Origin: Oopsacas minuta
Taxonomy: Eukaryota > Animalia > Porifera
Length of the DNA stretch: 64,000 nt
NCBI GenBank assembly: GCA_024704765.1
Contig: JAKMXF010000111.1
Span: 1,008,619 to 1,072,618, forward strand
Reading direction: 5' to 3'
A program made the translations under genes and the position numbers. The notes under the pieces are model-generated. The model searched no databases. It was not told the origin of the DNA and saw nothing but the letters and a program-made list of their open reading frames with translations. Below are positions 1-22,725 of this stretch, in pieces; position 1 is the first letter of the stretch; the number at the start of each line of letters is the position of its first letter.

Positions 1-3000
1 CTAGAAGATCCGTGTACATCAGCATGAATATAAACATCTCCTCCCACTAAATGTTTCTTAACAATAATCTCATTTTGTTGACGATCTCTCCCTCCAATCA
101 CAAGATAATTATCAGAAGAAATAAACCAGTAGAACTTCTCAAACCAATAAGTTTTACGAACTTTCTTAATCAGAGCAATAGTCTGTACTTGTTTAAGAGC
201 TATTTTAGTTTTCCTCTCTGCTGACTTTAGAGCTACTCCAGAAGCAGCAGTAGTCTTTTGTTGCTTTGCAAAGGCTTGTTTCTTCTGTTTATAGTATCTA
301 TCATATAACAGAATAAGTATTCTAGTCTACTCAATCAGGGTATGCTGAATAGTGTCAGAAACCTGGAAATATTAGCATAAGCTGTAAGTGTAACATCTAT
401 ATCAACTAGCATGCCATTTTCTCTACCAGAGGACTGTCTTGATTTAGGGAAGGGAGTAGCACCTAATTCCTCTTCATCGGATTCGGATGATGATTGACTA
501 GATTCGCTCTCTTCAGGGAAACTATACGTAAATAAAGTGACAAATAATCTACAGTCAATTCCCAATGTATCTAACACGGATATATAGAAGTCATAAATTG
601 AAGTAATTTTCGCGATTCCTTGAGCTTCATGACAAGTTGACAACTCAATACTTACGTTAAGTATATGAATACATGGTTATGGTGTAGATCAAGCTTCCTG
701 ATAACTTTAGCTGGATCACTGATAGCTGGATCAGTGTCTGTATTCTCCTGAGCATCTCTTATCATCTTCTCAATAGCACTCCAATCCATTGAGTCACTGA
801 GAGAGTCCCGTATCAGCTCAATCACCTTATCAACTAATTCAAGGTTCTTTTGTATCAGAGTAGCTTTGATCAAATTGGATTCCTGAGAAATAACATTAAG
901 CTAAAGCTCACCATACATAAACAATTAGTTACAAACCTGTATATTCTCCAATTCCCCTATCCTCTTATCATGATCTTTTCGAATGTTAGTTAACTTCTTG
1001 AATGCAGCTTTTTCATGAGTAAATGTCTTGCTACAGATCTTACTCTCTTCCAGCCGTGAAAAGAAACAGTCAACAGCTCTATTGAATGTGTCATAAGTAT
1101 CAACCAGTGATGATTCATACTGTAAGAATAGGAAAGGTTGGAAAGTATCCATTCTACAAAAGTTAAGACTAAATATAGCCATATTAGCTGTTCAAGTGTA
1201 TTTTCTGGGCAAACATTATGTACACATGTGACGTAAGTAAAAGTAAATAATCTCACATTTCAACGTCCTTCTGTTCTTCACCCAGCAGTCTTTCTGTAGC
1301 AGAATCAAATGTCTTAGTTTTCTTAAACACATAACCCTAAACGCAGTAGAATAATATAAACGATACTGATGGAGTATTATCACATAAAGTATACCTTAGC
1401 TTTCTCTGAGTCTTTCATCATAGCTTCTCCAACTAGCAACGCCTCGAATAACATCGCAACATCTGTATATTTATAAAATGAGCATACATAATAATTAATA
1501 CACTGATGAAGTTATAATTACCTGTTTCAGGGTTAAAACCGTTACCAAGTTTACATTTGATATTCATTCCTCTTTGCAGCAAGCAATGTTCTATCAAATA
1601 TCCACCAAAACCTTACAACAAACATATTTATCACATAAATGCTCTAACTTTATTAAAAACAAACCCACTCAGATGATGGTTCAAACTTTTCTTGATATCA
1701 GCTCCTGGTTTGAGTTCACTTACAAATGTCTGTATTCTATAAAATAGGATATTATTGGGAATTTTTTACAAAACTCATCACAAGACACCAAATATTGTGA
1801 TTAAATCTCACCTCTCCAATGTAAGTGGTTTATCAGGGGGTGTAATCTTGTCTACAGGGTACATCTCTCTCACAGCAAACCTAGTCTCTTCTCCATCCTT
1901 CCTTGTACGTAACAGACTCAGTATTATATACTGACCATCTGTTAATATTACATTACCCTAGCATACTAGGCTGTAAAATAATATATAGATTATCATGTAT
2001 TAAGCTTACTCTGTCATATAATTCTACAATAATATGATAGTTATCTGTTCCCGTAGTGAAGAATAGATCTATAACTCTGTCATTACCCATCTGGTTAAGA
2101 GATTCTAACCGAGAGTTACGTATGTGTTTCCGTAACTACACAAGCATAGGAATAATTACAATAATTTGTTAGTTTTACGGAATAAAAATTATACCTTCAT
2201 ACAGAATCCAGAAGGTGTGTTATGCTTAGGCCAGTCAAATTCTGTAAGATGTACTCTTGAGCCTGATTCAAACGTAAGCAGATACCTCTCATCTGGTCTG
2301 AAATATGCAAATAAATAATAGTCATAACAAGTTTAACCAATAAAACGCTGAAAATAAATTAACAGCCGTCCGACAAATATCGAACCCTAGCCATCCATTA
2401 CAAGTTATCAGTAAGAAAGTATTTACAACATTTAGCATTGTATCATATGTCCACAATGAGACAGAATATACACACCTATACACAGAAGATGCATAGCAAG
2501 ATGTGTGATAGGATTACAAAATATATATAGAAATAGATGAGAATGAAATATATTATTAATGATGAGCTATGAATTGTTTGCTAGAGGTTGTTCAGAATGA
2601 AAATTCCAATTCTGTCTTCGGGTTGTCACCTAAGAGAAGTACTTTAGACTTTGGTAGCCAGAATAATCTGAAGTTGTTATGACCTGAGTATGGAGGTACG
2701 GGTTGAGTATCAGAGGGTGTGGCAGCTTGGACAGCCTTCACAAGTTTGACAGTTGGATTGACCATCTGTCCTAAGATAGGGGGTGGAGTTGATACATGCC
2801 AGAGACGAACCTCTGAACTACCTTGACTATAACTACACAAATATTTTCCATCAATAGAGAATGTTAGACAAGTGACAGGTGAACTGTGTCCAACAAATTC
2901 CTGTAATTTATTATGCTTCAAATCGAATAGTCCTATATAACCAGATTTCCTACCTACAGCTAGATTGCTAGTCTTAACACACTGTGTATAACAACCTAGC

Positions 3001-6000
3001 TTCTCAATGGGAGGGAATATCTCTTCAATTTTACGATTTCTGAGTTCATCACTGCCTACACAGAATATTACCAATTGCATGAACTCTACAATCTTAAGAA
3101 CTACATGAGGTAGTCTCTTCTTTAATAATTCCTCTAATATCTTAAGTAAGACCTTTCTAGATCTAGGCAATAAGTGTAATCCTGATTTACTAATACCAGT
3201 TGCTATATCCGGTTCCTGATGCTCGTGACCTGGTACTGGTATCAAAGAATGTGAAGATCCTATAAATTGTATGTAAGTACTAACTTCCTTAGCCAACACA
3301 TCAATCATTTCATCTGCTCTTGTTTGGAATATATTAGTGAGTGCACGCATGGAGATGTTCCTGGCCAGTTGGTAATCAACACTAAGCATTTCTTCTACTG
3401 TGATAACTGGTTGAGTTACTGTTATCTCGAATAGAGACATTAACACAGAGGGAACCTCTAAGTATTTGCAGAAGAAACTGAATCCTTTAGCAATCAGCTC
3501 AGCAGCTGTTCTTCTCAAAGCTCCTTGTAGGGAGCATGATGAAGACTGAGGACAACACAGGATCCCCTGGAGGGAGAGGGCGACATGTTCCATCTCTTGT
3601 TTGCTGAGGATATCCCGATGTGTCCGTTCACTGGGTGTACTCGAGAAATCTTGTCCAGAGTCAGTAAACTCAGCTGCAATAACTGACAGAATAATTAGAG
3701 CAGTGAAGTACTCCTTAGCTTTGATGAGAGCTTCTGGATCGCTGAGATAGTCACCTACAGGAGGAGTTTCTATCTTAGACAGTCTGACCTCACTATGTTT
3801 CTTTCCAGACAATGCCTCCTTGTTACCATAGGTAATCCCCTTCACGCCATTCCTACAAGAGATAGGTTGAGGAGGCAGATGTTGATACCAGTATGTAACA
3901 GTACTCTGTAACGCTTTATAACTGATACTACGTAGCTGAGCTAACAACAGAGCTTGCGCAGCTTCTCGGATTTGTCCGTTATGATGTGGCCATTTGAGAG
4001 CTAATACTGAGAGGTGAGGAGGTGTGAATTTGTGTCCTAGCATTTCCGGTAGGAACACACACGTGAGGGTATTCAGTTGACTACAAGCTGTTAGCTTCCT
4101 CTGAAAAGACTCATCATTACTGGATCTCAGCTGTTTCCTACTGTACAGGTTCATACAACAGTAGCTGAGTGACGTCAGAGCTAACAGATGCTGTGTAGTT
4201 AGACCGGGACTGAGACACCATTTGTAGCAGAGAGGGAAACTAGAGATGGGAGTGTCTTGAAGCTTCAAAAGACTTGGTTCTATCCCCCATCCTGGCAGAT
4301 ATAAAGAAATACAGGAGTATTTGGAGAGGAGACCGTATTGAGGGGACATACCGAATTGGGCAGGTAGGCGTATCTTAAGAAACTCTTGGCAGATGTTATC
4401 AAGCTTAGAATCCATACCCCAGCTGTGTAGACATGAGATTAAAAAACGAGTAAAGAATGCAGTCTCCTGTCTCCTGTCATAAGGAGAAGGTCTCGTGGGA
4501 CTAGAAGAGAGCTCTAAGTCATTAGCACTCACTTTAGAAACTTGTTTGTCACTGCTTGGGATATGTTCAGAAGAAGTCAGCTGATCAATAAGAGGCTCCA
4601 TGTGTATAAGAAGAGTGGGTATAATAGCGTCATGTTGATGAGAACGATACATCTTAATACTAGCAATATTCTTTGTATTAATCAGTGAATTCTTACCAAC
4701 TTTAGGTATCTTTACTCCCAAGCTATCTCTACGCTGACCACTTGATAATCCTCCTGAATTGCTAGTGGTGATAATTTCTTCAGCTAGATGTCCTACTATA
4801 ACCCGGTCCAGAACTCCTGTGTCCATCTGCCATATGTAAACACGTCCATCATCACACCTTATAAGCATCAAGTCTTCTGCTGGCTTCCAACGTACGTGTG
4901 TGACAGGAGCAGAATGGTTTCCACATAGCAATACCTCCCTGAATTCTGAAAGACTCAGTATAGCAACTGAGTAGTCCTGGCCTATAGAGCATACTCCACA
5001 GTTCAGACGTGTGTTAGTCATTTTAGGACACACCTTCAAACGTAGTACCTCACCTACATGCTCTGTAAAGCAATGTAGATGTAATCTGTTCTCTATATCC
5101 CACACCCTAACTACTCCGTCAGCTCCTCCTGTCATTATGTATTTACTGTTAAACTGCTCAGAGTATTGTCTCGGGTACAATAGAGCTGTTACACGACCCC
5201 TATGAGCTTTCAACACGACTACGTCATCAGTAACACTATCTCCTGAACAAGATCTAAACACTATCTGATCCAAAGTTTTAACAAGAGGGAATATGATGAC
5301 GTAACCGTTGGTAAGGCCACACATAACTTTAGCTAGCTCAGGCAGATATAGGATAGAACTGATGTTGAAGTTGTTAGTAAAACCAGGATCTCTCTCCACC
5401 CAAGAGGATTCTAATACCATGACGTCATCTGGAATATGAGATGGTGAAACTGAGGAGTGAGACAGGAGTACTTCTTTAAAGTATGACGTCAGTCCTGATT
5501 GTTTGTCCAACAGTTCCCAGACATCTTTTAGTGACGTGGTGTAGTGAGGACAAGTCTTAGGTGGGTCTGACTGTTCCTTATCTGCTACCAAATCTAAGTC
5601 TAACTCCCACATAAGGAGAGACCCACTTACATTAGCTTGTACAAGCAGAACCTTACCATCTCTGTGTAACAGGTCCCATGAGGAGTACATTGGGATACTA
5701 ACACTTGTATCAGCCTGTAGACACCTCAAATATGTAACTTCAAACTTGTCCTCAGTACTAGTGGGCAGGAAGGAGTACATATGTGCTGTACTCAAACGTG
5801 ACCAAACTACAATATGCTCGTTATCAACAAAATCACCTCCCGACAGAGAGAACATATGGTCCATGCAGTCTACATGACACAGTTCTGGCAGCTGAGACTT
5901 AACACGTACTCCCAATACCTTAAAATATGAAGTGCCTACTACAAGTAATCTCTGAGCTATTAGTTTAGGCCAGTAAGTTAGATGCTGTACATTTATGTAA

Positions 6001-9000
6001 TCAGTGTGTCTACTCTTATCTTCTTCTTTACAGTAAGATTCTCTAGGAGACTGTAAATCAAGTCTGGGTACATCCCATATCTTAATCAGAGGTTCTGCTG
6101 TTATAGCGAGTACGTGAGTCTCCTTCTGATGGAGAGATAGAGGTAGAGGTAGCATAGCATTGATCCAATTCGGTTGCTCTTCACTGGTCAGGATTATAGC
6201 TAGATCTAGAGTTCTAGCGTCAAGAAGATAAGCTCTGCTATATTTACCAAATACTAGGAGGAGATGATTGGTCTGTGGAGGTCCCATGTACTTCATACGG
6301 ATATGTTCTCCTTCCAGGATTATTTGATGGGTACAAGCTCCATCCTTTGCATCCCAGCGGATAATCTCACCGTTACTACTAGCAGAGTATAGCATAGTAC
6401 CATCTTGTGAGTAGCAGAGAGCTGAAATTTGTTCAGAAGCACCGACTAGTAACAACTTAGCATGAGCCTGGTAGTTGTTGATAGGAGGGATAATCTGACC
6501 AGATAATTGATCAGTAGATACACGGGTAAACTCACGAAAAGACAGGCTCCATATACATATGAATCCCGATCTACAACCGGTAGCTACTTCCTGACCACTT
6601 GGACTAATAGCACAACAAGTAACATGATGGGACGGAGGTTCATTTCCCCAAAAGACGAGAGGAACTACAGTGGACATTATTACAGCTTTCTAGATCTTTG
6701 AAAGTTTGTATAGAAATTATAATATATCTGCAAGATAATCAAATATATAGTATACGTATGTCAATAAAATACGCATTTGCGACACAATATAAAGAAACGA
6801 TATACCTTTACATTGAATGAGTTTATTGATAGCATTGCAGATTTGATAAGATATGAATATGTGATAATATTCAGATTAAAATCAATTAAATGCTCCATTT
6901 ATATCACTAATTGGAAGATAATGAGGTGAACGAGATCCTATTTAGAAATCTCAAGAGTTAACTCAGGTGTCACATGTATCTAGTGCTTACGTGAATTCAT
7001 AGACAAATTATTAAATATACACATATGACATCGCTAATTGTGTATTTAAAAATGCAGAAAATTCAACAAATAAGTAAGCTGGCCGTATAAATCCGATATT
7101 GTATAAATCATGTTAGTATTAGTTGGGAGAATTCACGGGAATGAATTTATAAATGTCTTCATAGAAGCTCTATAATGAAATACTAAGGGTATCGTTAATT
7201 TAATAAATAAGGATGGTACATTCAACGCAGAGGCCATTCCTAATCTATAATTATAGTGGGTATAACAAAGCATAAATTTATATTAGCCTAATAGGTTAAA
7301 TGAGTAAAACATTACACGGCTTTTGTAAAAGTAGCAATTCTTATACTATGGAAAGCTTGCTGACAGAAATAATAGAATTAACAATTCAATCTATTGGCAC
7401 AAGACAAACCACATGTCTGTAGAATTATAGAATAGGTGGTATAATAGCAGGGTTCAACTCTTGAACGAGGTAAGCAAAACTGTAGAAAATTGAATAAATA
7501 GAGCAGGATAGAGCATACCATGTTACAATTATAATTTTCTTAAAATAATTTATAAGATTGAAAATTGTCTACGTTATTGCTATATGCCAAACTCAATGCT
7601 GTATGCTGAATATGGTGAAATAACTTTTGTGTAATTAGGGGTAGAGTCATGTGAGTGCCAAGTTTATTCATCAGAAACGTATACAATAAAATCTAGGAAT
7701 TAATCACATAATAGTGAGAACCAAACTGATTTTGAAATTACCTAAGTGGACAGAAAGTAAATAATTCTGATCATTCACACGAGTGGGTGCACGTCTAGCT
7801 GCAGGCGCACCTGTATGTGTCAATTCTGCTGATATTAGTTGACGTAGCATAATTTCGTATCATAAATTTGAAACATTGGTGAGTAACACTAGCTGGAGCT
7901 CTGTTAGAGCCCATAGAACTGTGACGATAGTTCACATATTTGAATAATAAGTAGAGGCCAATATAGTGGGATAGCAATATAAACAATGCATGATGTGTTT
8001 AATAGAGTATAGAAAATACAATTTATTTATCTTTGATTAAGTATGAGTATAAATGTTCAAAGGAAAATTGTAAAATGATGTGAGCCACTTTTGATTATGA
8101 CTTGGGCGATTTAATAGACTGTGTAGTCAGTAAGAAATATACATACAATTTCTTGAATAAAATACAAAGTGAATATAGAATTACAAATGAGAGAGCCTAT
8201 AAACGTGTCAATTCCTGGCGGATTGCTCCTCTCCCCAACCAGAGTGTGCAGTTGGTTTATGTTTGTCTAAAGTGAGTTGTTGGAATACTTCCAAGTTAAG
8301 AGGAGTGTGTGGGTCATCCCGAAGGAATAGGAACACGTTCCCCCCGATAAACTCATGCACGACCGTCGGATCACAAGATAGACAAGTGAAACCAAAGTCT
8401 CCCTCCTCGTGAATAACCCTCATCTCCCTAGTTTTCCAATTAATTTTCCATCGCTCCATGGCAGGATATCGCCATACTTTTACTTGAGCGAATGTGTTAA
8501 TATCAATAGCAATCAAGCGGTCGAATGCTATCCCGAGTAGAGCATCTCTCTTAGGTCTTGTGAATTGAACCAGAAAATAACTGATGCCAAAATTTTGTAA
8601 CTTAGCCCAGTTAGAAATGTACTCCATCTGAGCTTCAATCAGTGACAGATGAGGGATAGAAGCATGGGATTCTACTATTTTACGTGATAAATCTTTCATT
8701 TTGCTCTTGTATTTCTTAATAAACGACTGACTGACCAGAAGATTTGGCTGTAATTCTGGATTAGCTGCTCCAGGTGTAGCGCCATTTGTATCATTCTTAC
8801 CAACCTGCATAGCAATAAATGCATTCACACTAGCTTTCTCTCTCTCTAACTTACTCTCTGTAATAATCTCTCCTCTACCAGCTATTTTGAAGCTAGCCAT
8901 CCATTTTACATACTCGTCAGCATTATCACACAACACGCGAATATCATCACCACTTTCCAGCTGTAGAGTTATAGCATACTTGTTCTTAGCAGGGTCTAGA

Positions 9001-12000
9001 TCTGCCTCACTCACTGCTCCTTTCAGATTGTATTTATCAATAATGTTGCTATCGTCACTAGTCTTATATTCACATAAAGTCACACCTTGAAGCATGAACC
9101 AATAACGCTTTGGTCCTCGAAGTGTGAATCCACCCTTCGTTAATCTCATGTATCCAAATGTCTCCTCAGCCGGAGCCTGCATGTCTGTGTCTGTCTGACC
9201 TAGACTATCCTTTAGCTCCATTAGCTGTTGGTCTATATCTGAAGCGATAGCTGCGAAATTTTCTTTCTTTTGTTGTTCATTCTGAGAATACGCGAGTGTA
9301 ACTTGAAACTGTAATGCTGCGAATGTCATCGCCTCCTCTTCCGTACAATCTACTTCTTCACATAACACAGACCACTTAGCCTGTTCAAACAGCTGACGTA
9401 TCCTAAAGTCATCCAGTTGTGGGTTCAGATCCAAGAAGGCATGATACTTGAAACGGAGATACAGATGATCCTCATCAAACACATCTTGTTCGTATAAGGA
9501 TCGATTTGATTCCAACCAATTACTGTTGATATAAGCAAGATCCTTCAAGTTCTTGGTATATTCCTTAGCGAATAGATCAGCTGAATCATTCTGTCTGTGA
9601 AACTGAACTCCTTCAGGCTGGTATCCATAGTTCACGTCAGGATGATAGGTTCCATCTTCTAAACCGGCACCTTTTTCAACTTTCTTCTTCTTCTTGCGAC
9701 CTCCAACCGCACAATCCTCGCGAAATTTCAGAAGTGAGAGTTCCTCAGGACGACGGATACTCATTCGACGACACAACTCCATCACCACTTCGAACACGGG
9801 TCTACTGAAATTCATTACACACTTATACACTGACTTATCTGGTAATTCAACATAGAATCTATGATTCAGATTCAGTAATTGTATCTTTGCATCTGACATA
9901 ACTCCGTAACCATGAAGGGACTGTTGATGCTTACGCAACCACAATCTCTGTTCAGGCCACCATAAGCCGTAGTGTGATATGTTAGTTTCCAGGAGCTTGG
10001 AGGATAGAGTATTCAGTACGTGACCAACTGACCAATCACTCCTAACACGTAATACCTTTCTTGCACCCATATGCAACACCTCAACAGCGAGATCCCATTC
10101 CACCTCTTTAGCAGCCATAAATACAATATGAATATTCTGTCTCAACAATTGAATATTTGTCTGCAATATTTCAATTTCCACTGGCACTTATACTAAGAGA
10201 AGAGCTTACAGCCTATTAAGTGTATTTGTAGTTATAAAGTTGCAAAGGATTAGTCGACAGAAACCAAAAAATCAGTATACTAAGTCCACTTATATGGAAA
10301 GAATAATCGACTAGCCATATTTATACAAACGCAGTAATAAGCAATATTTATGGAGCTATCATTTTTGTAACTATGGAGACATATTGTTGTTGTATTAAAA
10401 TCTATGTGACAGTAAATTATGGCCATAGAAAGTCTGTATCAATATTACTACGAGGATTGTTTCTGACAGAAATTGAGACGCTACAAGTGTCAACCAAGAG
10501 GGATTCCCATAAATATTACCTAGAATAAATTTTAGCAAAACAGGTGATCTCTTCAAATCTGGAATGTCATGAATGGATGAGTCAGAATATTATCAAACAA
10601 TTAGATAGTGTAGAAATTTCAAAAGGAACTTACACAATACTGCATTAAATTATATGCCATAATTATGAATCTGTCAAGCAGTAATATTACAGCAGGTCAG
10701 ACTAACTTACAAATGAAACAAACACCTGTATATTATAATCATTGAATTAGGTGTTAAGCAGCTTTTGTAACGCAATGATGCCACATTAAGAGTACTTTTG
10801 GTAAGAATACGTATACGTACTTATATAATCATGAATAATAATGTGGGTGGGGGGAACACAAGGCAGCACACATTTGCTCACTCTGGCAGACTTGTGAGCC
10901 AATTACACCAGAAGTACAGAATGCTTGGCTCTTTAATTAGAAAGATACGTCTTGAAGATGAGTCGGTTCAGGTTACAGAGGCGCGAGAAGTTTCTGTCCA
11001 AAAGGATTCAGCAGGAATATTGCTTCAAGAACAATTCGAGGGTTCCTCGCTACGAACGATACCTCAAGATGTATTGGGACACATTTGCCGATGGACTGTA
11101 TCGATAAACCTCGGTCAGAGATATGGCATCATCATTGGTGCCACATCTCGTTTGTTACCCGGGACTTAGCCCACATAAGCAGAAAGTAATTATATTATAT
11201 GATCGATGAGCGTTATGGACTAGAGATCTCACATACAATTTCTGAATAAAATACAAAGTGAATAGAATTACAAATAAGAGAGCCTAATGCACAAATTCCC
11301 TGGCGGATTGTTCCTCTCCCCAACCAGAGTGTGCAGTGGGTTTGTCTAAGGTGAGTTGTTGGAATACTTTCAAGTCAAGAGGTGCGTATGGATCATCTCG
11401 TAGGTATAGGAACACGTTCCCCCCGATAAATTCATGTACAATCCTCAGGTCACATGAGAGACAAGTAAAACCAAAGTCTCCCTCCTCATGAATGACCCTC
11501 ATCTCCTTAGATTTCCAATTAATTTTCCACTGCTCCATGCCAGCATACCGCCACACTTTAATCTGATCAAAAGTGTTAATATCTATAGCTACCATGCGAT
11601 TGAATGCTATCCCGAGTAGAGCTTCTCTTTTAGGTCTTGTGAAATGAACCACAAAATAGCTGATACCAAAATCTAGTAACACCATCCAATTACGAATGTA
11701 CTGCATCTGAGCATCAATTAGGGATAGATTAAGGAAGGAAGCATGCGCTTCTACTATTTTACGTGATAAGTCCTTAACCTTGCTCTTGTATTTTTTAATG
11801 AACCTCTGACTGACCAGAAGATTTGGCTGTAATTCTGGATTAGCTGCTCCAGGTGTAGCGCCATTTGTATCATTCTTACCAACCTGCATAGCAATAAATG
11901 CATTCACACTAGCTTTCTCTCTCTCTAACTTACTCTCTGTAATAATCTCTCCTCTACCAGCTATTTTGAAGCTAGCCATCCATTTTACATACTCGTCAGC

Positions 12001-15000
12001 ATTATCACACAACACGCGAATATCATCACCACTTTCCAGCTGTAGAGTTATAGCATACTTGTTCTTAGCAGGGTCTAGATCTGCCTCACTCACTGCTCCT
12101 TTCAGATTGTATTTATCAATAATGTTGCTATCGTCACTAGTCTTATATTCACATAAAGTCACACCTTGAAGCATGAACCAATAACGCTTTGGTCCTCGAA
12201 GTGTGAATCCACCCTTCGTTAATCTCATGTACCCAAATGTCTCCTCAGCCGGAGCCTGCATGTCTGTATCTGTCTGACCTAGACTATCCTTTAGCTCCAT
12301 TAGCTGTTGGTCTATATCTGAAGCGATAGCTGCGAAATTTTCTTTCTTTTGTTGTTCATTCTGAGAATACGCGAGTGTAACTTGAAACTGTAATGCTGCG
12401 AATGTCATCGCCTCCTCTTCCGTACAATCTACTTCTTCACATAACACAGACCACTTAGCCTGTTCAAACAGCTGACGTATCCTAAAGTCATCCAGTTGTG
12501 GGTTCAGATCCAAGAAGGCATGATACTTGAAACGGAGATACAGATGATCCTCATCAAACACATCTTGTTCGTATAAGGATCGATTTGATTCCAACCAATT
12601 ACTGTTGATATAAGCAAGATCCTTCAAGTTCTTGGTATATTCCTTAGCGAATAGATCAGCTGAATCATTCTGTCTGTGAAACTGAACTCCTTCAGGCTGG
12701 TATCCATAGTTCACGTCAGGATGATAGGTTCCATCTTCTGAACCGACGCCTTTTTCAACTTTCTTCTTCTTCTTGCGACCTCCAACCGCACAATCCTCGC
12801 GAAATTTCAGAAGTGAGAGTTCCTCAGGACGACGGATACTCATTCGACGACACAACTCCATCACCACTTCGAACACGGGTCTACTGAAATTCATTACACA
12901 CTTATACACTGACTTATCTGGTAATTCAACATAGAATCTATGATTCAGATTCAGTAATTGTATCTTTGCATCTGACATAACTCCGTAACCATGAAGGGAC
13001 TGTTGATGCTTACGCAACCACAATCTCTGTTCAGGCCACCATAAGCCGTAGTGTGATATGTTAGTTTCCAGGAGCTTGGAGGATAGAGTATTCAGTACGT
13101 GACCAACTGACCAATCACTCCTAACACGTAATACCTTTCTTGCACCCATATGCAACACCTCAACAGCGAGATCCCATTCCACCTCTTTAGCAGCCATAAA
13201 TATATTATTCTATTTATGAAAATTATGTCTCAACAATTTCCAGAATATTGTGTTTCAATATTCACTGGCTGTTATATAAAGACACAAGACCTTAGGCCTA
13301 TCATACTTCTAGAATAGCTATTAAGTCGTAGAGGAGAGTTGGAAACCAAAAAATTATTTGCACTAGTACCACTTTTATGGATAATCAAAAGTATTATCTA
13401 TAATACTTACGAAAGAATTTGTATAACAATTATACAAATTCTTTCCAGACATATTGACGCCAAATATGTATCGTAAAATTATTGACAAATTTATCAGTAT
13501 TTGGAAACGTGGCATTCGAATCAAAGGACAAATAATCGACATATTAGTTCTCAGTGGCATACCATTGTGGTTATACCAGGTTATAGCTAGAGATTCAAAT
13601 TGTAATTAATTGGAGATATCAAGTTGGTGTGTATCTCGCAAAGGTCGTGAGACAGCTATAATTCGAGGTTAGAAAACAGCTATATCGACGAGAGTACTCT
13701 ATTACATTCATTAATTGATATAATAAAATAGCTATCTAGAATCTTGTACGATAAGTGTACCTTCAGGTATCCCCTCCAACCTTATGAGTAGGTAACGTAT
13801 TTGGTAACGACCTCTCCCATCCTTCTTAAGGTCTGCATTAACCCGTCCCATTCTCCTCTGCCCCCGTACATTATACTCTATACGCATGTGGTCACTATCA
13901 CCCACTTTGTAGGGGACATGATCAATGTGTCTCCGTCTGTTCCAACCTGTGTGTTCCCCAAACCCGCGAATTGGCTCACCCAGTACTCGTCTTACATTCT
14001 CATCTTCTCGTATAACCTTAAGTGTCCGAGTGAATAAAGAGTTGAGTGAGTTACTTGAGAAGAATTCGCTAAAAAATGCCCAAATAAGAATCGCAGTTAA
14101 TCCGAATGCTACAATAATAACGCCAGAGTATGTTGCATCCTTTCCACCGCGTACAACTTTCTCTATTGGAGTAAGTGCTTTAGGATCTCTTTCTACAACT
14201 TTCAACAAACTAGAGTGTCTGATTTTCTCATTCACATTTTCCTGGTCAAGGGGAGACTGTAATTTTGTTGAATAACATAAATACGTATGTTTGTAAGGTT
14301 TGCCATAGGCTATGGGTTGGTATACTCTTGAAATAAAACTCATACTAACGGGTTTTCTTGAAATGATGAAGATGGAGCGAAATAACGAATGCATTATACT
14401 TTCAAACGAATTTCCAAATCAGTAGAGTGTAGCTAAGGTATAAAGTAATGGATAATGTTCCTCTCCATGGCTACTCTATAACATATTCCAGATTAACAGA
14501 GCCTTTCACAAAATATGGAGACTACTAATACTAACGTTATGTTTGTATGTTTCAATTTGGGAGCACGTTAGAACTTAGAACTACCAATAATTTCAAACAA
14601 AACGTAGCCTATAATGCCCAGAAGGTAACGTGTATACTTTGTATAAATTAATGCGCAAATATTCACAGCTAATGGTAAAAATGAAGTGACAGAGTGCAGT
14701 GTACTAATTAGTGTTCTAATACGTGAAACTTTACAACTATGGAATAATGTTCTCCTGAACATTATCCACTAGGGAATATCGTCCCTGAACATTATTAATA
14801 TGTCATAAGTACTTTGGGGTGTAAGCGAGATTTGGGGATCCCCGTCCCTAAAACGCTAGCGATATAGGAACGGGGAGGGGCGAAACTTAGATCTCGAAAA
14901 CAAGTTAAACGCTTACACCAGAAGGAAGTTATTAGTAAAGATATAGAATTTTATAAGACAGGAATCACGGGATTGTGAAGTGTCAAAATTTACAAATTTA

Positions 15001-18000
15001 TATATCTTGTTAGATCGATTCGCGGCGGAAACTCTCACGAATTAGGCTTTTGATGTCATGTTTGTTCACACCTTTGACTGATACTTAGCGCCAGTAATTA
15101 ATCAATCAATTAGGCTGTGAATTTATGAAGAACTAATGCAGTTGCTTTCGCCTGTAGACTTAACTAGTTATGCTGAATCCAAATTTCACGTTTTCCAAGT
15201 TGAAATTGCATGCGTATAAATTGATTGTTGGGTCATGTAAAATAAATTACTTGTTTCTCATCCGGAATTTCTTCGGAAATTGGGACGGCGGACGGTATTT
15301 TATTATTATTCTTAGCCTAGCTCCGTGTTTCTGCCCCCTTTGATTGCACAATCTATGATCAAAGAATTAAATTGTCCAAAAATTCGGAAAAAATACTAAC
15401 AAAATGTTTAGTAATAACAGTACTTATTTTTGAAAAACTTTCCCTGAATATTCAGATTCAGCTATATTATACGTATATCATTCGTATATCATTTTATATG
15501 TGCGGTATTTTAAATTAGCCTCTTGAATCAATGGATAAGATAACGTTCTATGATGAATCCTCTAGCGAGGAGGAAGAGCTGACTGTTCCCCTCCCTGAGG
15601 GTTGGGAGGATCGTATCACTCCCACTAACAAGGTCTACTATGTGAATCATAAGGAGAGGGTAACACAATGGGAGCACCCTGTCAGTGGTAAAATAAGATC
15701 AGTAACCTCCTTCCTACCTTACGGATGGGGTCGTCAGGAAGATACAGAAGGAAATCGTATTTTCGTAGAATACTTAGCTCAGCGTGCAGCTTACACAGAC
15801 CCCAGATTGCTAACTAATCCTCATAGAAAGAGGTATGTATTGAAAATAGCTAAAGCTCAAGGAAGGTTTGTGGAGAATTCCTTTACTGACAGAACTACAG
15901 CTGCTGAAGTAATCGAGGGAGTAGATATGACAGGAAAAGTAGCGATAGTTACAGGTTCTAACTCAGGGATTGGGTATGAGACAGCTCGCTGTCTTGCTTC
16001 ACAAGGCTGTCACGTTATAATGGCTTGTCGGGATATGACATTAGGTAATAGCAAGGCTGAGAATATCATCAAGATATTTCCACAAGCAAAACTGAGTGTT
16101 ATAAAGCTAGATCTTTCTCAAAAGGAAAGTGTTGAACAATTCTCATCGGAATTTCTCTCATTACAACTACCCTTACATATTCTAGTACTGAATGCCGGAG
16201 TATTAGGGTTGAACTGGGCTCTCAGTAGCTATGAATGTGAGATGCAATTCTCTATCAACTATCTTGGACATTTCCATCTATTCTATCTTCTCAAAGACAT
16301 ACTCAAACAATCTGCTCCTGCTAGAGTGGTGTGTGTATCTTCAGAAGCTCATCGATATACAAACCTCAATCATAGTAACTTAGACTTAGACACATCTCTG
16401 TCTAAAACTAAACCACGTGACTACACAGCTATTACAGCTTATGGTAATTCTAAGCTATGCTGTATCTATCTAGCACTAGAAATACATAGAAGATATGACC
16501 AGGATGGAATACATGCATACGCGGTGCATCCTGGTGTATTGATATCTACACGTCTATCACGTAATTGGTGCATGTACAGATTGTTATACTTCGCTTCCCG
16601 CTGCTTCACGAAAACCGTAGCTCAGGGGGCGTCTAGTGTTGTGTATTGTGCTGCTAGTCCTCTCCCTGCTGAGGAGAGTGGACTCTATTATTTTAACTGT
16701 AAACCTTCTCGTCCCTCCAACTCTGCACAGAATTCTCATCCAGCTGGAATTCTCTGGGATGTTTCACTGAGACTTATAGGAGAGGGTGACAGGAGAGAGG
16801 AGGACCTATCAGCTGATACTGAGACATAAAGGATTTGTGATTATATAGTTGTATACTGTTTAAGTCAATTACATTGTAGTAACTAGTTATACTTTTAGTG
16901 ATATTATTAATATTCTGATATCTGTAACTAGTTAGTAATATGAGTGATAAATCTCGAAAGAGGACACACCCTCCTCCCGATAGAGAGGACTACAAACTGA
17001 GACAAAAGAAGCGGAGACAGTCAGGGGGTCCTCAGGACACACAAGGGATAGACACATGGAAGATAGAAACCTTCAAACCTGAACACAACCCTGCTCCCTT
17101 TCTAGAAGAGAGTAGTTTCTCAATTCTATTCCCTCGCTACAGAGAGGTTTATATTCGAGAGGTTTGGCTACTAGTAGTACAGGCACTTAAGTCTTACGGA
17201 GTAGAGGCAGAGTTAGACCTGATAGAAGGGAGTATAACAGTACGTACCTCCAGTAAGACATGGGATCCATTCATAATAATAAAATCACGTGACATGGTTA
17301 AACTACTATCAAGAGGGGTACCTATCCAACAAGCCAAACGTATACTAGAAGATGATACAGTATGTGATGTCATCAAGATAGGAGGCTTAGTAAGGAACAA
17401 GGATAGATTCGTACGACGTAGACAGAGACTGCTAGGGCCTCAAGGTGCTACCCTCAAGGCTTTGGAACTCCTGACTGGATGTTATATGTTAGTACAAGGT
17501 AATACTGTATGTGTTATAGGAAGTTATGCTGGATTGAAAAGTGTTAGGAAAGTTGTAACAGATTGTATGAACAACATACATCCTATCTACAATATTAAGA
17601 CTCTAATGGTAAAGAGAGAGTTAATGAAGAATCCTGAATTAGCTAATCAGAGCTGGGATAGATTCCTCCCTAAATTCAAGAAGGTTAACGTGAAGAGAAA
17701 GAAAGTAGCTAAGAAACAGAAGACTCCTTATACCCCATTCCCCCCTCCCCCACCAGAGAGTAAGGTAGACAAGTCTCTGACTAGTGGAGAGTATTTCTTA
17801 GGGGAGAAAGAGAAGGAGAAAGTCCGTCGAGAAGCCAAGTCTAAGAAACAGAAAGAGATCAAATTTCAAAGAGAGGAGAAGAGACAGAAATTATTTGAAC
17901 CTCCTAAAGAATTTAAAGTGACAACAGATAAAATTCAACAACCAAATCAAGAAGTAGATATTATTGCTCTCAAGAAAAAGATGAAGAAAAACAAACTTGG

Positions 18001-20258
18001 AAATTATAAAAAGATTTCTAATTAGATATTTACAAACAATTATTGGGATAAGTTAACCTACGAATTACCTTATGAATAAATACGTGTAGAATCTTATGTG
18101 TAGCAATAAACTGACATGATGCAATGTTCTTTAACATTCCTAGTGCGCAGTGCTGTATCTAGGAAGGGACTGAGACAATTTTCTCGTCTATCTGCTCACC
18201 AGATGAGCGGTATAAGAAACACGGGTAGAGTATTCGCATCAGTTGCTCTACTGACATTTGGTGTGTCTTATGCTGCCGTACCGTTGTACCGATTGTTCTG
18301 TCAGGCTACAGGGTATGGAGGTACCACTCTTAGACATAAGGACCCTGAGAAACTAGAGAAACTGGAGCCGGTCCGAGAGAGGAAAATAACTATCCGGTTT
18401 AACGCGGATACTAACGCGTCTATGCAATGGCAATTCAAGCCTCAACAAAGTGAAATCCAGCTTGTACCAGGAGAAGCAGCTCTAGCCTTCTACTCAGCTT
18501 ACAATAGCACTGACAGACCAATAACTGGTATGTCTACTTACAATGTACTACCATTCGATGCTGGTCAGTATTTTATAAAAATACAATGCTTCTGTTTTGA
18601 AGAACAGATACTGAATGCTGGAGAGCACGTAGAACTACCAGTATTCTTCTATATAGACCCAGACATAGCGAATGACCCGGGGCTATCATCTGTTGACACT
18701 ATCACACTCTCTTATACATTCTTTGAAGCTAAGCCAGAAGCTAGTTTATATTATCAATTAACTCCATCTGTTAAGTAGACATTATAGATTAATTATTGTA
18801 TTAATTATAGCATCTATGAAACTTTGAGCAAATATTATTGATACTAATTAAACAGGGAATTTAGTAAAACGAGGAAAAGGGGTAGCATTTTTCTGCGTCC
18901 TTGGTACCCCTATTGTGGAGATCACATTGTACTGTAAAACGTGGGGCTTGCTAGCTACTTCCTTATTTTAGACAAATATACACTAAGAATTAAAATACGA
19001 TTATATACATGTGATGGTTACCTTATCTTGTTTCTAGTATGCCTACACAAGTATTAAGCTTACTACGTCCACCAGGGAAATTCCCTCTACGCCGTACGGT
19101 AGAATATCTCCAGCGAGGAAGACAATTAAAGCCTGGAATAGAAAGCGTAGGAATTTATTTTAAACCTCTCCTCCCAGCTGATTACGGTACCAGACAATTC
19201 GTATTCTATAATCTACCTCAATTAGTATATGTAAATCCTCATATACAATTCAATACATTCAAGAGTCAACGTAAATACGCTAGTATAGATTTCTATCTCA
19301 CGGGGGGAGATCGAATACAAGTTGACTTGGATGGTAAGACGCGAGAAGAAGTGGTAGAGGTTGTGCTAAAAATCGCAGAAAAAAGTCCTGAACAAATCGA
19401 AGCAGATAAAAAGCCTACTAATGTAAACCCTATGTATCCGAAGTACCTTATTAACCCGGCAAACGTTGGCTGGCGATACTTCGGACAGAGGAAGTGTATG
19501 TGCGAGGTTCCTGGACAACTTGTTTGTTCAAAATATAAAAAGAACTGGCCAAAAGATGTTAAAAAGTATGCAGATAAAATAAGTGGGATTGGTAAGGGAA
19601 AGAAAGTAGACAGTAAATTCGTAGATTTAGAAAAATAGAAATAACTTTATCATTATTACGAAGAATTGTAATTAAGATATGGTACATTTAATTAAAATTG
19701 AGGTTGTTGTCATAGCAACACATCTGGGGTGTAAATATTTCCCTGCGGTTCTAAGCTAAAGTGCCATACAATCCGCTTTTTTTATTTTCTTTAAATGTCT
19801 CCTGAGGATATCCATTTTCATTCGAATGGATCTTTATTGTAAAAGAAGCAACAAACACATAAAAAGTAGTGTAACATTGTTACGTATCGATTCAGCTGGT
19901 TGATGCGAGAAAATATGGAATATATGTATAGCCAAATAAATAGTATTAAAAAGTTAACAACTAACCTATTGAGCTTTAGGATATACGTCTTGTTATCAAT
20001 ATCATAGATGTTATTGACTTTACATCCTGGAAGTCTAAACAAACACATAATTATATGAACTAAATCCATATTCAGGGGCGTCGAACTTTCTAACTTGAAC
20101 GATCCTAGGGCTCACACACATATTGTCTAACGTAAATATGCCCTGTAGATAGAATATTTGTATTCCTACGTAAATAAATTAAAATAAATTACAACTTACA
20201 ATTTTTGCAATTCTCTTACAATCACAATAACATCAAGAGTGGTGAATCTTAATTTCAT
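1..20258 (-). CDS. NEMF: NEMF/Rqc2 ribosome quality control factor, multi-exon; 3' end runs off the window start; intron 2 is 17.7 kb
   Basis: Manual splicing: exon 1 20200-20258 ([19 protein letters not shown]+TT, gtaagt), exon 2 19966-20034 ([22 protein letters not shown]+AG, gttagt), exon 3 2195-2297 (tttcag, A+[34 protein letters not shown]), exon 4 2010-2135 ([10 protein letters not shown]...VELYDR), then [10 protein letters not shown]. Track ORFs 925-1182, 652-873 and 335-643 carry later NEMF motifs ([37 protein letters not shown]). These junctions are in phase. Confidence 0.93.
2592..6677 (-). CDS. WDR7: WD repeat protein 7 / rabconnectin-3 beta, intronless, nested in NEMF intron 2
   Basis: 1361-aa ORF. 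The N-terminus [14 protein letters not shown]...ATGC..G.IC.W matches WDR7/WDR72. It has multiple WD40 repeats ([36 protein letters not shown]) and a C-terminal WD pair. Confidence 0.88.
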   Translation of the reverse strand: MSTVVPLVFWGNEPPSHHVTCCAISPSGQEVATGCRSGFICIWSLSFREFTRVSTDQLSGQIIPPINNYQAHAKLLLVGASEQISALCYSQDGTMLYSASSNGEIIRWDAKDGACTHQIILEGEHIRMKYMGPPQTNHLLLVFGKYSRAYLLDARTLDLAIILTSEEQPNWINAMLPLPLSLHQKETHVLAITAEPLIKIWDVPRLDLQSPRESYCKEEDKSRHTDYINVQHLTYWPKLIAQRLLVVGTSYFKVLGVRVKSQLPELCHVDCMDHMFSLSGGDFVDNEHIVVWSRLSTAHMYSFLPTSTEDKFEVTYLRCLQADTSVSIPMYSSWDLLHRDGKVLLVQANVSGSLLMWELDLDLVADKEQSDPPKTCPHYTTSLKDVWELLDKQSGLTSYFKEVLLSHSSVSPSHIPDDVMVLESSWVERDPGFTNNFNISSILYLPELAKVMCGLTNGYVIIFPLVKTLDQIVFRSCSGDSVTDDVVVLKAHRGRVTALLYPRQYSEQFNSKYIMTGGADGVVRVWDIENRLHLHCFTEHVGEVLRLKVCPKMTNTRLNCGVCSIGQDYSVAILSLSEFREVLLCGNHSAPVTHVRWKPAEDLMLIRCDDGRVYIWQMDTGVLDRVIVGHLAEEIITTSNSGGLSSGQRRDSLGVKIPKVGKNSLINTKNIASIKMYRSHQHDAIIPTLLIHMEPLIDQLTSSEHIPSSDKQVSKVSANDLELSSSPTRPSPYDRRQETAFFTRFLISCLHSWGMDSKLDNICQEFLKIRLPAQFGMSPQYGLLSKYSCISLYLPGWGIEPSLLKLQDTPISSFPLCYKWCLSPGLTTQHLLALTSLSYCCMNLYSRKQLRSSNDESFQRKLTACSQLNTLTCVFLPEMLGHKFTPPHLSVLALKWPHHNGQIREAAQALLLAQLRSISYKALQSTVTYWYQHLPPQPISCRNGVKGITYGNKEALSGKKHSEVRLSKIETPPVGDYLSDPEALIKAKEYFTALIILSVIAAEFTDSGQDFSSTPSERTHRDILSKQEMEHVALSLQGILCCPQSSSCSLQGALRRTAAELIAKGFSFFCKYLEVPSVLMSLFEITVTQPVITVEEMLSVDYQLARNISMRALTNIFQTRADEMIDVLAKEVSTYIQFIGSSHSLIPVPGHEHQEPDIATGISKSGLHLLPRSRKVLLKILEELLKKRLPHVVLKIVEFMQLVIFCVGSDELRNRKIEEIFPPIEKLGCYTQCVKTSNLAVGRKSGYIGLFDLKHNKLQEFVGHSSPVTCLTFSIDGKYLCSYSQGSSEVRLWHVSTPPPILGQMVNPTVKLVKAVQAATPSDTQPVPPYSGHNNFRLFWLPKSKVLLLGDNPKTELEFSF
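8208..10118 (-). CDS. FERMT: Kindlin/fermitin copy A (F0-F1-F2-PH-F3), intronless; likely start is the ATG at 10118
   Basis: F0 motif [13 protein letters not shown], poly-Lys F1 loop, LRFKYHAF and [29 protein letters not shown] (F2), inserted PH domain, F3 ending [11 protein letters not shown]. The track's extra 23 N-terminal residues are absent from copy B. Confidence 0.92.
   Translation of the reverse strand: MAAKEVEWDLAVEVLHMGARKVLRVRSDWSVGHVLNTLSSKLLETNISHYGLWWPEQRLWLRKHQQSLHGYGVMSDAKIQLLNLNHRFYVELPDKSVYKCVMNFSRPVFEVVMELCRRMSIRRPEELSLLKFREDCAVGGRKKKKKVEKGAGLEDGTYHPDVNYGYQPEGVQFHRQNDSADLFAKEYTKNLKDLAYINSNWLESNRSLYEQDVFDEDHLYLRFKYHAFLDLNPQLDDFRIRQLFEQAKWSVLCEEVDCTEEEAMTFAALQFQVTLAYSQNEQQKKENFAAIASDIDQQLMELKDSLGQTDTDMQAPAEETFGYMRLTKGGFTLRGPKRYWFMLQGVTLCEYKTSDDSNIIDKYNLKGAVSEADLDPAKNKYAITLQLESGDDIRVLCDNADEYVKWMASFKIAGRGEIITESKLEREKASVNAFIAMQVGKNDTNGATPGAANPELQPNLLVSQSFIKKYKSKMKDLSRKIVESHASIPHLSLIEAQMEYISNWAKLQNFGISYFLVQFTRPKRDALLGIAFDRLIAIDINTFAQVKVWRYPAMERWKINWKTREMRVIHEEGDFGFTCLSCDPTVVHEFIGGNVFLFLRDDPHTPLNLEVFQQLTLDKHKPTAHSGWGEEQSARN
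11284..13197 (-). CDS. FERMT: Kindlin/fermitin copy B, tandem paralog, intronless
   Basis: 637-aa ORF with the same domain layout as copy A; F3 contains MEQWKINW. Confidence 0.92.
   Translation of the reverse strand: MAAKEVEWDLAVEVLHMGARKVLRVRSDWSVGHVLNTLSSKLLETNISHYGLWWPEQRLWLRKHQQSLHGYGVMSDAKIQLLNLNHRFYVELPDKSVYKCVMNFSRPVFEVVMELCRRMSIRRPEELSLLKFREDCAVGGRKKKKKVEKGVGSEDGTYHPDVNYGYQPEGVQFHRQNDSADLFAKEYTKNLKDLAYINSNWLESNRSLYEQDVFDEDHLYLRFKYHAFLDLNPQLDDFRIRQLFEQAKWSVLCEEVDCTEEEAMTFAALQFQVTLAYSQNEQQKKENFAAIASDIDQQLMELKDSLGQTDTDMQAPAEETFGYMRLTKGGFTLRGPKRYWFMLQGVTLCEYKTSDDSNIIDKYNLKGAVSEADLDPAKNKYAITLQLESGDDIRVLCDNADEYVKWMASFKIAGRGEIITESKLEREKASVNAFIAMQVGKNDTNGATPGAANPELQPNLLVSQRFIKKYKSKVKDLSRKIVEAHASFLNLSLIDAQMQYIRNWMVLLDFGISYFVVHFTRPKREALLGIAFNRMVAIDINTFDQIKVWRYAGMEQWKINWKSKEMRVIHEEGDFGFTCLSCDLRIVHEFIGGNVFLYLRDDPYAPLDLKVFQQLTLDKPTAHSGWGEEQSAREFVH
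13732..14394 (-). CDS. TIMM21: Mitochondrial import inner membrane translocase subunit Tim21
   Basis: Basic/hydroxylated presequence-like N-terminus, one TM helix ([17 protein letters not shown]), motifs [15 protein letters not shown] and [10 protein letters not shown]. Confidence 0.9.
   Translation of the reverse strand: MHSLFRSIFIISRKPVSMSFISRVYQPIAYGKPYKHTYLCYSTKLQSPLDQENVNEKIRHSSLLKVVERDPKALTPIEKVVRGGKDATYSGVIIVAFGLTAILIWAFFSEFFSSNSLNSLFTRTLKVIREDENVRRVLGEPIRGFGEHTGWNRRRHIDHVPYKVGDSDHMRIEYNVRGQRRMGRVNADLKKDGRGRYQIRYLLIRLEGIPEGTLIVQDSR
14395..15530. promoter_or_regulatory. Putative bidirectional promoter between head-to-head TIMM21 and WWOX
   Basis: 1.1-kb gap between divergent start codons. 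Visibly CpG-rich patches (gattcgcggcgga ~15017, catccggaatttcttcggaaattgggacggcggacgg ~15260) stand out in an otherwise CpG-poor window. Confidence 0.5.
15531..16829 (+). CDS. WWOX: WW domain-containing oxidoreductase, intronless
   Basis: WW1 LPEGWEDR...YYVNH...TQWEHP, WW2 LPYGW...YTDPRL, SDR cofactor motif TGSNSGIG and catalytic YGNSK. Confidence 0.95.
   Translation: MDKITFYDESSSEEEELTVPLPEGWEDRITPTNKVYYVNHKERVTQWEHPVSGKIRSVTSFLPYGWGRQEDTEGNRIFVEYLAQRAAYTDPRLLTNPHRKRYVLKIAKAQGRFVENSFTDRTTAAEVIEGVDMTGKVAIVTGSNSGIGYETARCLASQGCHVIMACRDMTLGNSKAENIIKIFPQAKLSVIKLDLSQKESVEQFSSEFLSLQLPLHILVLNAGVLGLNWALSSYECEMQFSINYLGHFHLFYLLKDILKQSAPARVVCVSSEAHRYTNLNHSNLDLDTSLSKTKPRDYTAITAYGNSKLCCIYLALEIHRRYDQDGIHAYAVHPGVLISTRLSRNWCMYRLLYFASRCFTKTVAQGASSVVYCAASPLPAEESGLYYFNCKPSRPSNSAQNSHPAGILWDVSLRLIGEGDRREEDLSADTET
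16940..18025 (+). CDS. KRR1: KRR1 small subunit processome component
   Basis: [66 protein letters not shown]. Confidence 0.96.
   Translation: MSDKSRKRTHPPPDREDYKLRQKKRRQSGGPQDTQGIDTWKIETFKPEHNPAPFLEESSFSILFPRYREVYIREVWLLVVQALKSYGVEAELDLIEGSITVRTSSKTWDPFIIIKSRDMVKLLSRGVPIQQAKRILEDDTVCDVIKIGGLVRNKDRFVRRRQRLLGPQGATLKALELLTGCYMLVQGNTVCVIGSYAGLKSVRKVVTDCMNNIHPIYNIKTLMVKRELMKNPELANQSWDRFLPKFKKVNVKRKKVAKKQKTPYTPFPPPPPESKVDKSLTSGEYFLGEKEKEKVRREAKSKKQKEIKFQREEKRQKLFEPPKEFKVTTDKIQQPNQEVDIIALKKKMKKNKLGNYKKISN
18116..18778 (+). CDS. COX11: Cytochrome c oxidase copper chaperone COX11
   Basis: [18 protein letters not shown], copper-binding [21 protein letters not shown]. Confidence 0.96.
   Translation: MMQCSLTFLVRSAVSRKGLRQFSRLSAHQMSGIRNTGRVFASVALLTFGVSYAAVPLYRLFCQATGYGGTTLRHKDPEKLEKLEPVRERKITIRFNADTNASMQWQFKPQQSEIQLVPGEAALAFYSAYNSTDRPITGMSTYNVLPFDAGQYFIKIQCFCFEEQILNAGEHVELPVFFYIDPDIANDPGLSSVDTITLSYTFFEAKPEASLYYQLTPSVK
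19039..19638 (+). CDS. MRPS25: Mitochondrial ribosomal protein S25
   Basis: [31 protein letters not shown]....[13 protein letters not shown]. Confidence 0.85.
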   Translation: MPTQVLSLLRPPGKFPLRRTVEYLQRGRQLKPGIESVGIYFKPLLPADYGTRQFVFYNLPQLVYVNPHIQFNTFKSQRKYASIDFYLTGGDRIQVDLDGKTREEVVEVVLKIAEKSPEQIEADKKPTNVNPMYPKYLINPANVGWRYFGQRKCMCEVPGQLVCSKYKKNWPKDVKKYADKISGIGKGKKVDSKFVDLEK

Positions 20259-22260: not shown

Positions 22261-22725
22261 ATTGAGTGAATGGAATGTGTTGATGTAGACAGAAGATTAA
22301 ATGACTGAGAGAAAACTGCATTATATCAAATGGAATCAATTGAAGAGTGTTGTTACTTACATCACGACATCTAAATGCAAATATTATGACTTATGTTCTA
22401 TTCTAATTATTATTTCTGGGTACAAAGATTAACTGCATTTGTACAAATTAAATGCCCACTCTAGTCTGTATTGTAACATAAGGGGAATAATGGTACATCC
22501 TTACGAATCAATTCAAGTGTAATTCAGTTCCTTAAAATAGGCAATATCTGTAGTATGCGATACATACTCATACCTACATGTTTGTAACAGTTCTGTCTGC
22601 CTATGTTCCTCTACTTTGGTTTCTTGTCAATCTAAAGCTATCCTAAACCTTTTTGTATTTATTACCGCTTTAATCCTCATTTTTATTTGCTTAATTATCG
22701 ATCAGATCGAGAGCTCAGTGCAAGC

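Follow-up and report, generated by a model that had tools for sequence, protein, structure and literature searches.

We analysed a 64,000-nt stretch of the genome of the glass sponge Oopsacas minuta (GCA_024704765.1, contig JAKMXF010000111.1; hereafter the window, in which position p is contig position 1,008,618 + p), which carries on its minus strand the ribosome quality-control gene NEMF and, within the second intron of that gene, eight further genes: WDR7, two kindlin genes (A and B), TIMM21, a WWOX-like gene, KRR1, COX11, and MRPS25. All eight guests are uninterrupted single-exon open reading frames (ORFs) with the expected domains, spanning 2592-19638 within an intron that runs from 2298 to 19965 (Table 1). 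The intron measures 17,668 nt and is ~100-340 times longer than the remaining NEMF introns in the window, which are 52-134 nt long apart from the 165-nt intron 1. An initial annotation of the window, made from the letters alone, had proposed a 17.7-kb intron with eight complete genes, roughly 100-fold longer than other introns of about 60-170 bp, and both statements hold on measurement.

The domain content of the host (NFACT-N from residue 1, then NFACT-R and NFACT-C) assigns it to the NEMF/Rqc2 (NFACT) family. In the public model, the NEMF body contains NFACT_N, NFACT-R_1, and NFACT-C, the NFACT-R exon has 1178 relatives at E ≤ 1e-10, and the spliced product encoded in the window (569 aa) aligns over its whole length, from residue 1, to the full-length NEMFs of the tunicate Phallusia, the leech Helobdella, and Capsaspora. 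Joining exon 2 to exon 3 preserves the reading frame, and in phmmer searches against solved structures the exon 2 peptide matches residues 22-41 of human NEMF and that of exon 3 residues 44-77, with nothing missing between the two exons. When residues 1-80 were searched against the window with tblastn, matches were found solely at 20258-20199, 20033-19968, and 2296-2195, with everything else at E > 0.1; there is no second copy of NEMF exons 1-3 in the window, including near 2.4 kb, which was one place where a separate 5′ exon pair would have undone the proposed structure.

Evidence that the intron is removed comes from RNA. Four of the sequencing runs considered were made from one sample (X1, X2, and X3, DNA; X4, RNA-seq), and a fifth (X5) comes from a close relative. 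In X4, all ten small NEMF introns between 297 and 2195 appear as CT..AC joints (GT..AG on the minus strand), including that at 2135/2195. One X4 contig passes from exon 4 into exon 3, departs from the genome at 2299, and then continues ATTGAGCTTTAGGATATACGTCTTGTTA, a 28-letter string that the window contains once, in the terminal part of exon 2 (19968-19995). The CT preceding ATTGAGCTTTAGGATATACGTCTTGTTA is common to the intron end and the exon 2 end, and in the contig exon 3 is therefore joined to the final 30 nt of exon 2. Intron 2 is removed in mature RNA, with exon 2 joined to exon 3, and the exon coordinates, the donor AAT AG/gttagt, the acceptor tttcag, and the in-frame restoration are all as originally read from the sequence. 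The word depth of the junction contig (~797) is apparently equal, by our reading of the contig table, to that of other NEMF contigs, and the spliced exon 2-exon 3 form is therefore probably the main form of NEMF. If Logan contigs are built from 31-letter words, as we assume, a stop 30 nt into exon 2 is expected where a spliced path meets an unspliced one. None of the listed X4 contigs runs from the intron into exon 3; the nearest (2302-2690) belongs to the WDR7 3′ untranslated region (UTR). X5 was considered as a source of RNA from a relative and rejected, as its contigs run through introns, mark it as low-depth DNA from an organism 96-97% identical, and carry no evidence on splicing.

At the DNA level, the donor end of intron 2 is crossed by separately built contigs of three read sets (18305-22000, 18497-20793, and 15250-23572), and the acceptor end by contigs 1384-2768 and 377-8756, with at most a few allelic differences from the window. 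No sign of an assembly join, which the initial annotation had named as a possible refutation, was seen at either intron end in the per-run DNA contigs. The arrangement is real DNA rather than an assembly join, and for the intron interior (8757-15249) the gene order is supported by synteny with other assemblies.

Table 1. Positions of NEMF, its guest genes, and neighbouring features in the window
Feature	Position	Strand	Description
NEMF exons 4-13	1-2135	-	ten small introns of 52-134 nt; gene extends ~2.3 kb past the window start
NEMF exon 3	2195-2297	-	acceptor tttcag, opens A CCA GAT; A + 34 residues
NEMF intron 2	2298-19965	-	17,668 nt, GT..AG, phase 2 in codon 43, eight guests
Guest 1, WDR7	2592-6677	-	1361 aa; WD40 propellers; homologues named WD repeat-containing protein 7
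Guest 2, kindlin A	8208-10118	-	636 aa from first ATG at 10118; Kindlin_2_N, FERM_M, PH
Guest 3, kindlin B	11284-13197	-	637 aa; Pfam kindlin domains
Guest 4, TIMM21	13732-14394	-	220 aa; TIM21 domain, E 7e-26
Gap between divergent TIMM21 and WWOX-like	14395-15530		1136 nt; presumed two-way guest promoter region, from geometry
Guest 5, WWOX-like	15531-16829	+	432 aa; Pfam WW + adh_short (short-chain dehydrogenase, SDR); PDB matches to SDRs and WW domains
Guest 6, KRR1	16940-18025	+	361 aa; KH_KRR1 domains 1 and 2; Atlas matches; 110 nt past WWOX
Guest 7, COX11	18116-18778	+	220 aa; CtaG_Cox11, E 2e-59; 90 nt past KRR1
Guest 8, MRPS25 (mS25)	19039-19638	+	199 aa; L51_S25_CI-B8; mitoribosomal mS25 chains, E 2e-26
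NEMF exon 2	19966-20034	-	22 residues + AG of codon 43, donor AAT AG/gttagt
NEMF intron 1	20035-20199	-	165 nt, GT..AG; from sequence + reading frame
NEMF exon 1, coding part	20200-20258	-	ATG at 20258, 19 residues + 2 nt, donor TT/gtaagt; from sequence
Divergent region, presumed NEMF promoter	20259-21351		1.1 kb, NEMF ATG to HCNGP-like gene; from geometry
HCNGP-like gene	21352-22260	+	neighbour upstream of NEMF exon 1

Four of the guests (WDR7, kindlins A and B, and TIMM21) lie on the host strand and the other four on the opposite strand, with MRPS25 converging on NEMF exon 2. Most of the guests are housekeeping genes, widely conserved and not members of one family. From exon 3 to exon 2, the gaps between successive features are 294, 1530, 1165, 534, 1136, 110, 90, 260, and 327 nt. 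Guest coding sequence accounts for 12,222 of the 17,668 nt (69%), and the earlier description of the intron as almost entirely filled by these genes is thus right about the eight genes and too strong about the share of the intron that they code for. The guests are complete, expressed genes, presumably with promoters of their own. WDR7 is covered from 2302 to 5198 by colinear, unspliced X4 RNA contigs, and X4 contains 0.82 of the words sampled from 15500-20400, a share consistent with the four plus-strand guests being expressed, UTRs included. The contig that covers the WDR7 3′ UTR (2302-2591) stops only 5 nt short of the acceptor of NEMF exon 3, and no poly(A) evidence was seen; the WDR7 3′ end and the NEMF polypyrimidine tract and acceptor therefore seem to occupy the same few bases. 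Counts of AATAAA and ATTAAA 3′ of the guest stops were set aside as evidence, since at this base composition chance alone would give ~0.7 such hexamers in every 300 nt.

The two kindlins are 94% identical overall, with ~100% identity over the first ~480 residues and 72-86% over the C-terminal 160 residues, a pattern that fits gene conversion over the 5′ 1.4 kb together with a diverging 3′ end. Copy B is 82-90% identical to kindlins of the relatives described below and copy A 80-86%; two kindlins are present in O. minuta alone, each of the four relatives having one, and the duplication is therefore placed in the O. minuta lineage. Between the kindlins lies a 123-aa ORF (10798-11169, plus strand) with no Pfam match, which may be a chance ORF. 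No structured RNA genes or tRNAs were detected in the window (Rfam gathering thresholds; ARAGORN).

Two further observations concern the NEMF gene and its surroundings. Within a NEMF exon, at 377-413, the contigs of runs X1 (long-read-like) and X2 (Illumina) both break, and X1 has, at lower depth, a second path whose 255 letters differ; a heterozygous structural variant and an insertion allele are both conceivable. Separately, there is an inverted pair of 58 nt (550-607 and 23560-23617) with 78% complementarity. The first arm falls within a NEMF intron and the second past the HCNGP-like gene, at a distance of 23 kb, and the pair probably represents part of a dispersed repeat.

The split gene is conserved. 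Comparison was made with four other assemblies, presumably other glass sponges, whose WDR7 proteins are 74-81% identical to that of the window and of which at least some were built with other assemblers. In all four, WDR7, one kindlin, and TIMM21 lie on one strand and WWOX, KRR1, COX11, and MRPS25 on the other, NEMF exons 2 and 1 stand just past MRPS25, and exon 3 stands just past WDR7; seven guests are thus common to O. minuta and every relative, and the synteny comparison suggested at the outset returned the same split each time. Intron 2 lengths in these assemblies, computed from tblastn coordinates and record ranges, are 16,887 nt in ERZ25072730 (exon 1 identity 95%, exon 2 100%), 16,025 nt in ERZ20067936 (about 90% and 96%), 15,199 nt in ERZ25766962 (about 95% and 100%), and 14,507 nt in ERZ25071281 (100% and 100%), where “about” marks identities counted over 20 exon 1 residues because the alignments ran into the intron. 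In the two relatives examined for splice sites, the donor (AG/GTAAGT or AG/GTTGGT) and acceptor (TAG/ACC or CAG/ACC) leave the phase unchanged. An apparent duplicate of exons 2 and 3 in one relative, suggested by the first tblastn matches, was rejected, the alignments being run-ons into intron sequence.

The content and surroundings of the nest vary to some degree among these genomes. An extra NHL/DUF5128 gene stands between COX11 and MRPS25 in two relatives (L003, 10650-12017; L008, 10708-11984), and its presence or absence, as read from the assemblies, points to gene gain or loss inside the nest; in one relative this gene is split into two ORFs and is perhaps broken. Upstream of exon 1, three of the four relatives have the HCNGP-like neighbour and one does not. 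An unmatched ORF of 120 aa, which may have arisen by chance, is located between the TIMM21 and kindlin genes of one relative (L002, 5562-5924).

For the age of the intron, NEMF proteins of two outgroups (Helobdella robusta and Capsaspora) were mapped onto their own loci. Introns of the H. robusta gene fall after codon 20, within codon 43 (phase 2, ~750 nt), and after codons 77 and 119, the same four positions as in O. minuta, and those of Capsaspora fall at codons 20, 77/78, and 119, with none at codon 43. Because the codon 43, phase 2 position is also occupied in Helobdella, the giant intron is an old animal intron that has been enlarged rather than a new one, and in glass sponges it has grown to 14.5-17.7 kb through the block of single-exon genes that it contains. 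As to how it grew, no repeats or transposon ends flank the guest block (the repeats in the window are the kindlin duplication and two weak inverted pairs), and no duplicated exon pieces marking the intron ends were found. The block, with its own central divergent gap, resembles an ordinary piece of chromosome, and insertion or rearrangement of a block seems more likely than eight separate retro-insertions.

Taking the observed mRNA junction, the continuity of the DNA at both intron ends, the intact guests, the preservation of the split across five genomes, and the antiquity of the intron position together, we favour, with a probability of roughly 85%, a giant NEMF intron that is spliced in cis and in which the guest genes are nested. 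RNA polymerase II would initiate in the 1.1-kb divergent region upstream of 20258, common with the HCNGP-like gene, and would transcribe exons 1 and 2 and then the entire intron, running antisense to MRPS25, COX11, KRR1, and WWOX and sense to TIMM21, the kindlins, and WDR7; cis-splicing would then join the exon 2 donor with the exon 3 acceptor (2297). NEMF would then be a single minus-strand transcription unit of ~22.6 kb, whose polymerase would pass the 3′-end signals of four same-strand guests. The guests would be driven by intronic promoters, of which the clearest candidate is the central divergent gap (14395-15530). Pairing of the intron ends, as a means of bringing the splice sites together, was rejected, since the duplex of the first and last 300 nt (-73.5 kcal/mol) compares with -71.0 ± 6.0 kcal/mol for shuffles.

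Several points weigh against a cis-spliced giant intron, and the alternatives draw on some of them. The 3′-end signals of the four same-strand guests should tend to halt NEMF transcription, the last of these genes having its 3′ UTR contig end within 5 nt of the exon 3 acceptor, and no feature suppressing such signals was found in our analyses of the locus. X4 is the sole RNA run that we found for O. minuta, and it is available as assembled contigs rather than reads; in these contig data no RNA contig or read spans the whole of intron 2, RNA support for exons 1 and 2 consists of the last 30 nt of exon 2 (the rest coming from sequence, frame, and conservation), and the junction is compatible with cis and trans splicing alike. 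Trans-splicing between separate transcripts is known from Drosophila mod(mdg4) and C. elegans eri-6/7. Applied to NEMF, it would join a short exon 1-2 RNA, started from a promoter at ~20.3 kb and ending in the intron, to a NEMF body started near or within the WDR7 3′ region, and it would accommodate the four same-strand guests with their own 3′ ends between donor and acceptor, as well as the stop of the junction contig 30 nt into exon 2, which fits a branch to an unspliced exon 2-intron path (31-letter words again being assumed). Glass sponges also possess machinery for spliced-leader trans-splicing (PMC10282587). We nevertheless regard gene-to-gene trans-splicing as very unlikely: exons 1-2 and the body are colinear and on the same strand in five genomes while the neighbours have changed, which trans-splicing would not need and which differs from the separate, typically non-colinear units of mod(mdg4) and eri-6/7; the splice sites are normal GT..AG ones, at a position ancestrally occupied by a cis-spliced intron; and a body transcript started on its own, its acceptor unused, should yield contigs that cross from the intron into exon 3, of which there is none among the listed X4 contigs. 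Judged by the RNA contigs, whose depth measures expression poorly, NEMF seems no less abundant than WDR7.

A variant of the cis-spliced explanation, which we consider unlikely, places an operon inside the intron, such that the NEMF promoter would give one polycistronic RNA from which TIMM21, the kindlins, and WDR7 are freed by spliced-leader trans-splicing and polyadenylation, with uncleaved molecules yielding NEMF mRNA. A spliced leader does exist in glass sponges (PMC10282587), and acceptor-like pyrimidine tracts ending in TAG or CAG stand upstream of several guest ATGs and recur in the relatives, but the same-strand spacers of 534-1530 nt leave room for own promoters, compared with 90-260 nt on the plus strand, and the leader was found on only ~4% of long reads in the glass sponge Aphrocallistes vastus (PMC10282587). 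A broader and rather unlikely proposal, offered tentatively, is that a single conserved, coupled transcription unit comprises the four same-strand guests together with exons 1-2 and the promoter of NEMF, whether as an intronic operon or with exons 1-2 serving as a gene-specific trans leader; if true, such mechanical coupling of host and guests would explain why the split was kept in five glass-sponge genomes while flanking genes changed. An assembly artefact, either a gene block misplaced between exon 2 and exon 3 of NEMF or a stray fragment bearing the 5′ exons, could be entertained in that the window is a single published assembly whose intron interior (8757-15249), with its near-identical kindlin repeat, lies outside the read-level contigs, the gene order there being backed by synteny, which likewise counts against the favoured structure. 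The chance of such an error is close to nil, given that DNA contigs from three read sets cross both intron ends, four other assemblies have the same order, and exons 1-3 are single-copy in the window.

The plus-strand guests may have an operon-like organization of their own. WWOX, KRR1, COX11, and MRPS25 share one orientation with spacers of 110, 90, and 260 nt, and the run is kept in all four relatives. Of the 15 KRR1, COX11, and MRPS25 sequences from five genomes, which are homologous and hence not independent, 14 have their ATG preceded within 17 nt by a pyrimidine-rich tract that ends in TAG. These tracts, the short spacers, and the published glass-sponge leader make a spliced-leader operon plausible for this run, and the four genes may form an operon-like unit resolved by spliced-leader trans-splicing. 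An exact-protein look-up with MRPS25, aimed at guest RNA contigs, returned the genome record alone.

These findings also bear on the public record of the locus, with which the window agrees without a mismatch over 16,677 nt. The public NEMF model (951 aa) starts at Met76, at window position 2200 inside exon 3, and is without the 75 N-terminal residues; the residues absent from it are the start of the NFACT-N domain. The public WDR7 model (LOD99_329), a partial protein 100% identical to that of the window, has 880 aa compared with the uninterrupted 1361-aa ORF, which is 74-81% identical to its relatives over full length, and the NEMF nest itself is absent from the public annotation. The present analysis thus corrects a record in which NEMF lacks its first 75 residues, WDR7 is truncated, and the nest is not entered. 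More generally, in a genome of otherwise ~60-nt introns, an intron that takes in a block of genes can become several hundred times longer and remain functional over the long term. With four host-strand guests, and with the WDR7 3′ UTR ending within a few bases of the NEMF acceptor, this locus is well suited to asking how the polymerase of an early-branching animal reads through internal 3′-end signals, and spliced-leader operons are possibly part of the answer.

Introns that hold several genes are familiar from other animals. In Drosophila dunce, several genes including Sgs-4 lie in one large intron, and intron 27b of human NF1 contains EVI2A, EVI2B, and OMG. NEMF resembles these in having several independent genes in one long intron near the host 5′ end while the host is still spliced correctly. 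The hosts dunce and NF1 have many long introns, whereas the other NEMF introns in the window are 52-165 nt long and 69% of the giant intron is guest coding sequence; half of the NEMF guests, moreover, are on the host strand.

The closest comparison is with glass sponges themselves. In A. vastus, 2432 nested genes make up 12.4% of all genes, with 12,409 single-exon transcripts among 19,578 genes and a spliced leader of ~37 nt (Francis et al. 2023, PMC10282587), and nesting is thus genome-wide in glass sponges, so that the initial annotation overstated the case in calling the NEMF intron far beyond typical nesting. Microsynteny between A. vastus and O. minuta is wide and many nests are conserved between glass sponges, glassin being a published example nested in both species, although for technical reasons just 83 nested genes are entered in the annotation of O. 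minuta, compared with the 2432 of the curated set for A. vastus (PMC10282587). Our literature search found no publication describing the NEMF nest. The locus shares with the published nests its single-exon guests in an intron of a multi-exon host, its setting in a small, dense genome, and its having been missed by automatic annotation; it differs in that the published account (PMC10282587) gives counts and one single-guest example, without NEMF, an eight-guest intron, or four host-strand guests, and the five-genome conservation and ancestral intron position come from the present analysis. The NEMF nest is therefore a large and well-supported case of an architecture already known in glass sponges, and not a new kind of system.

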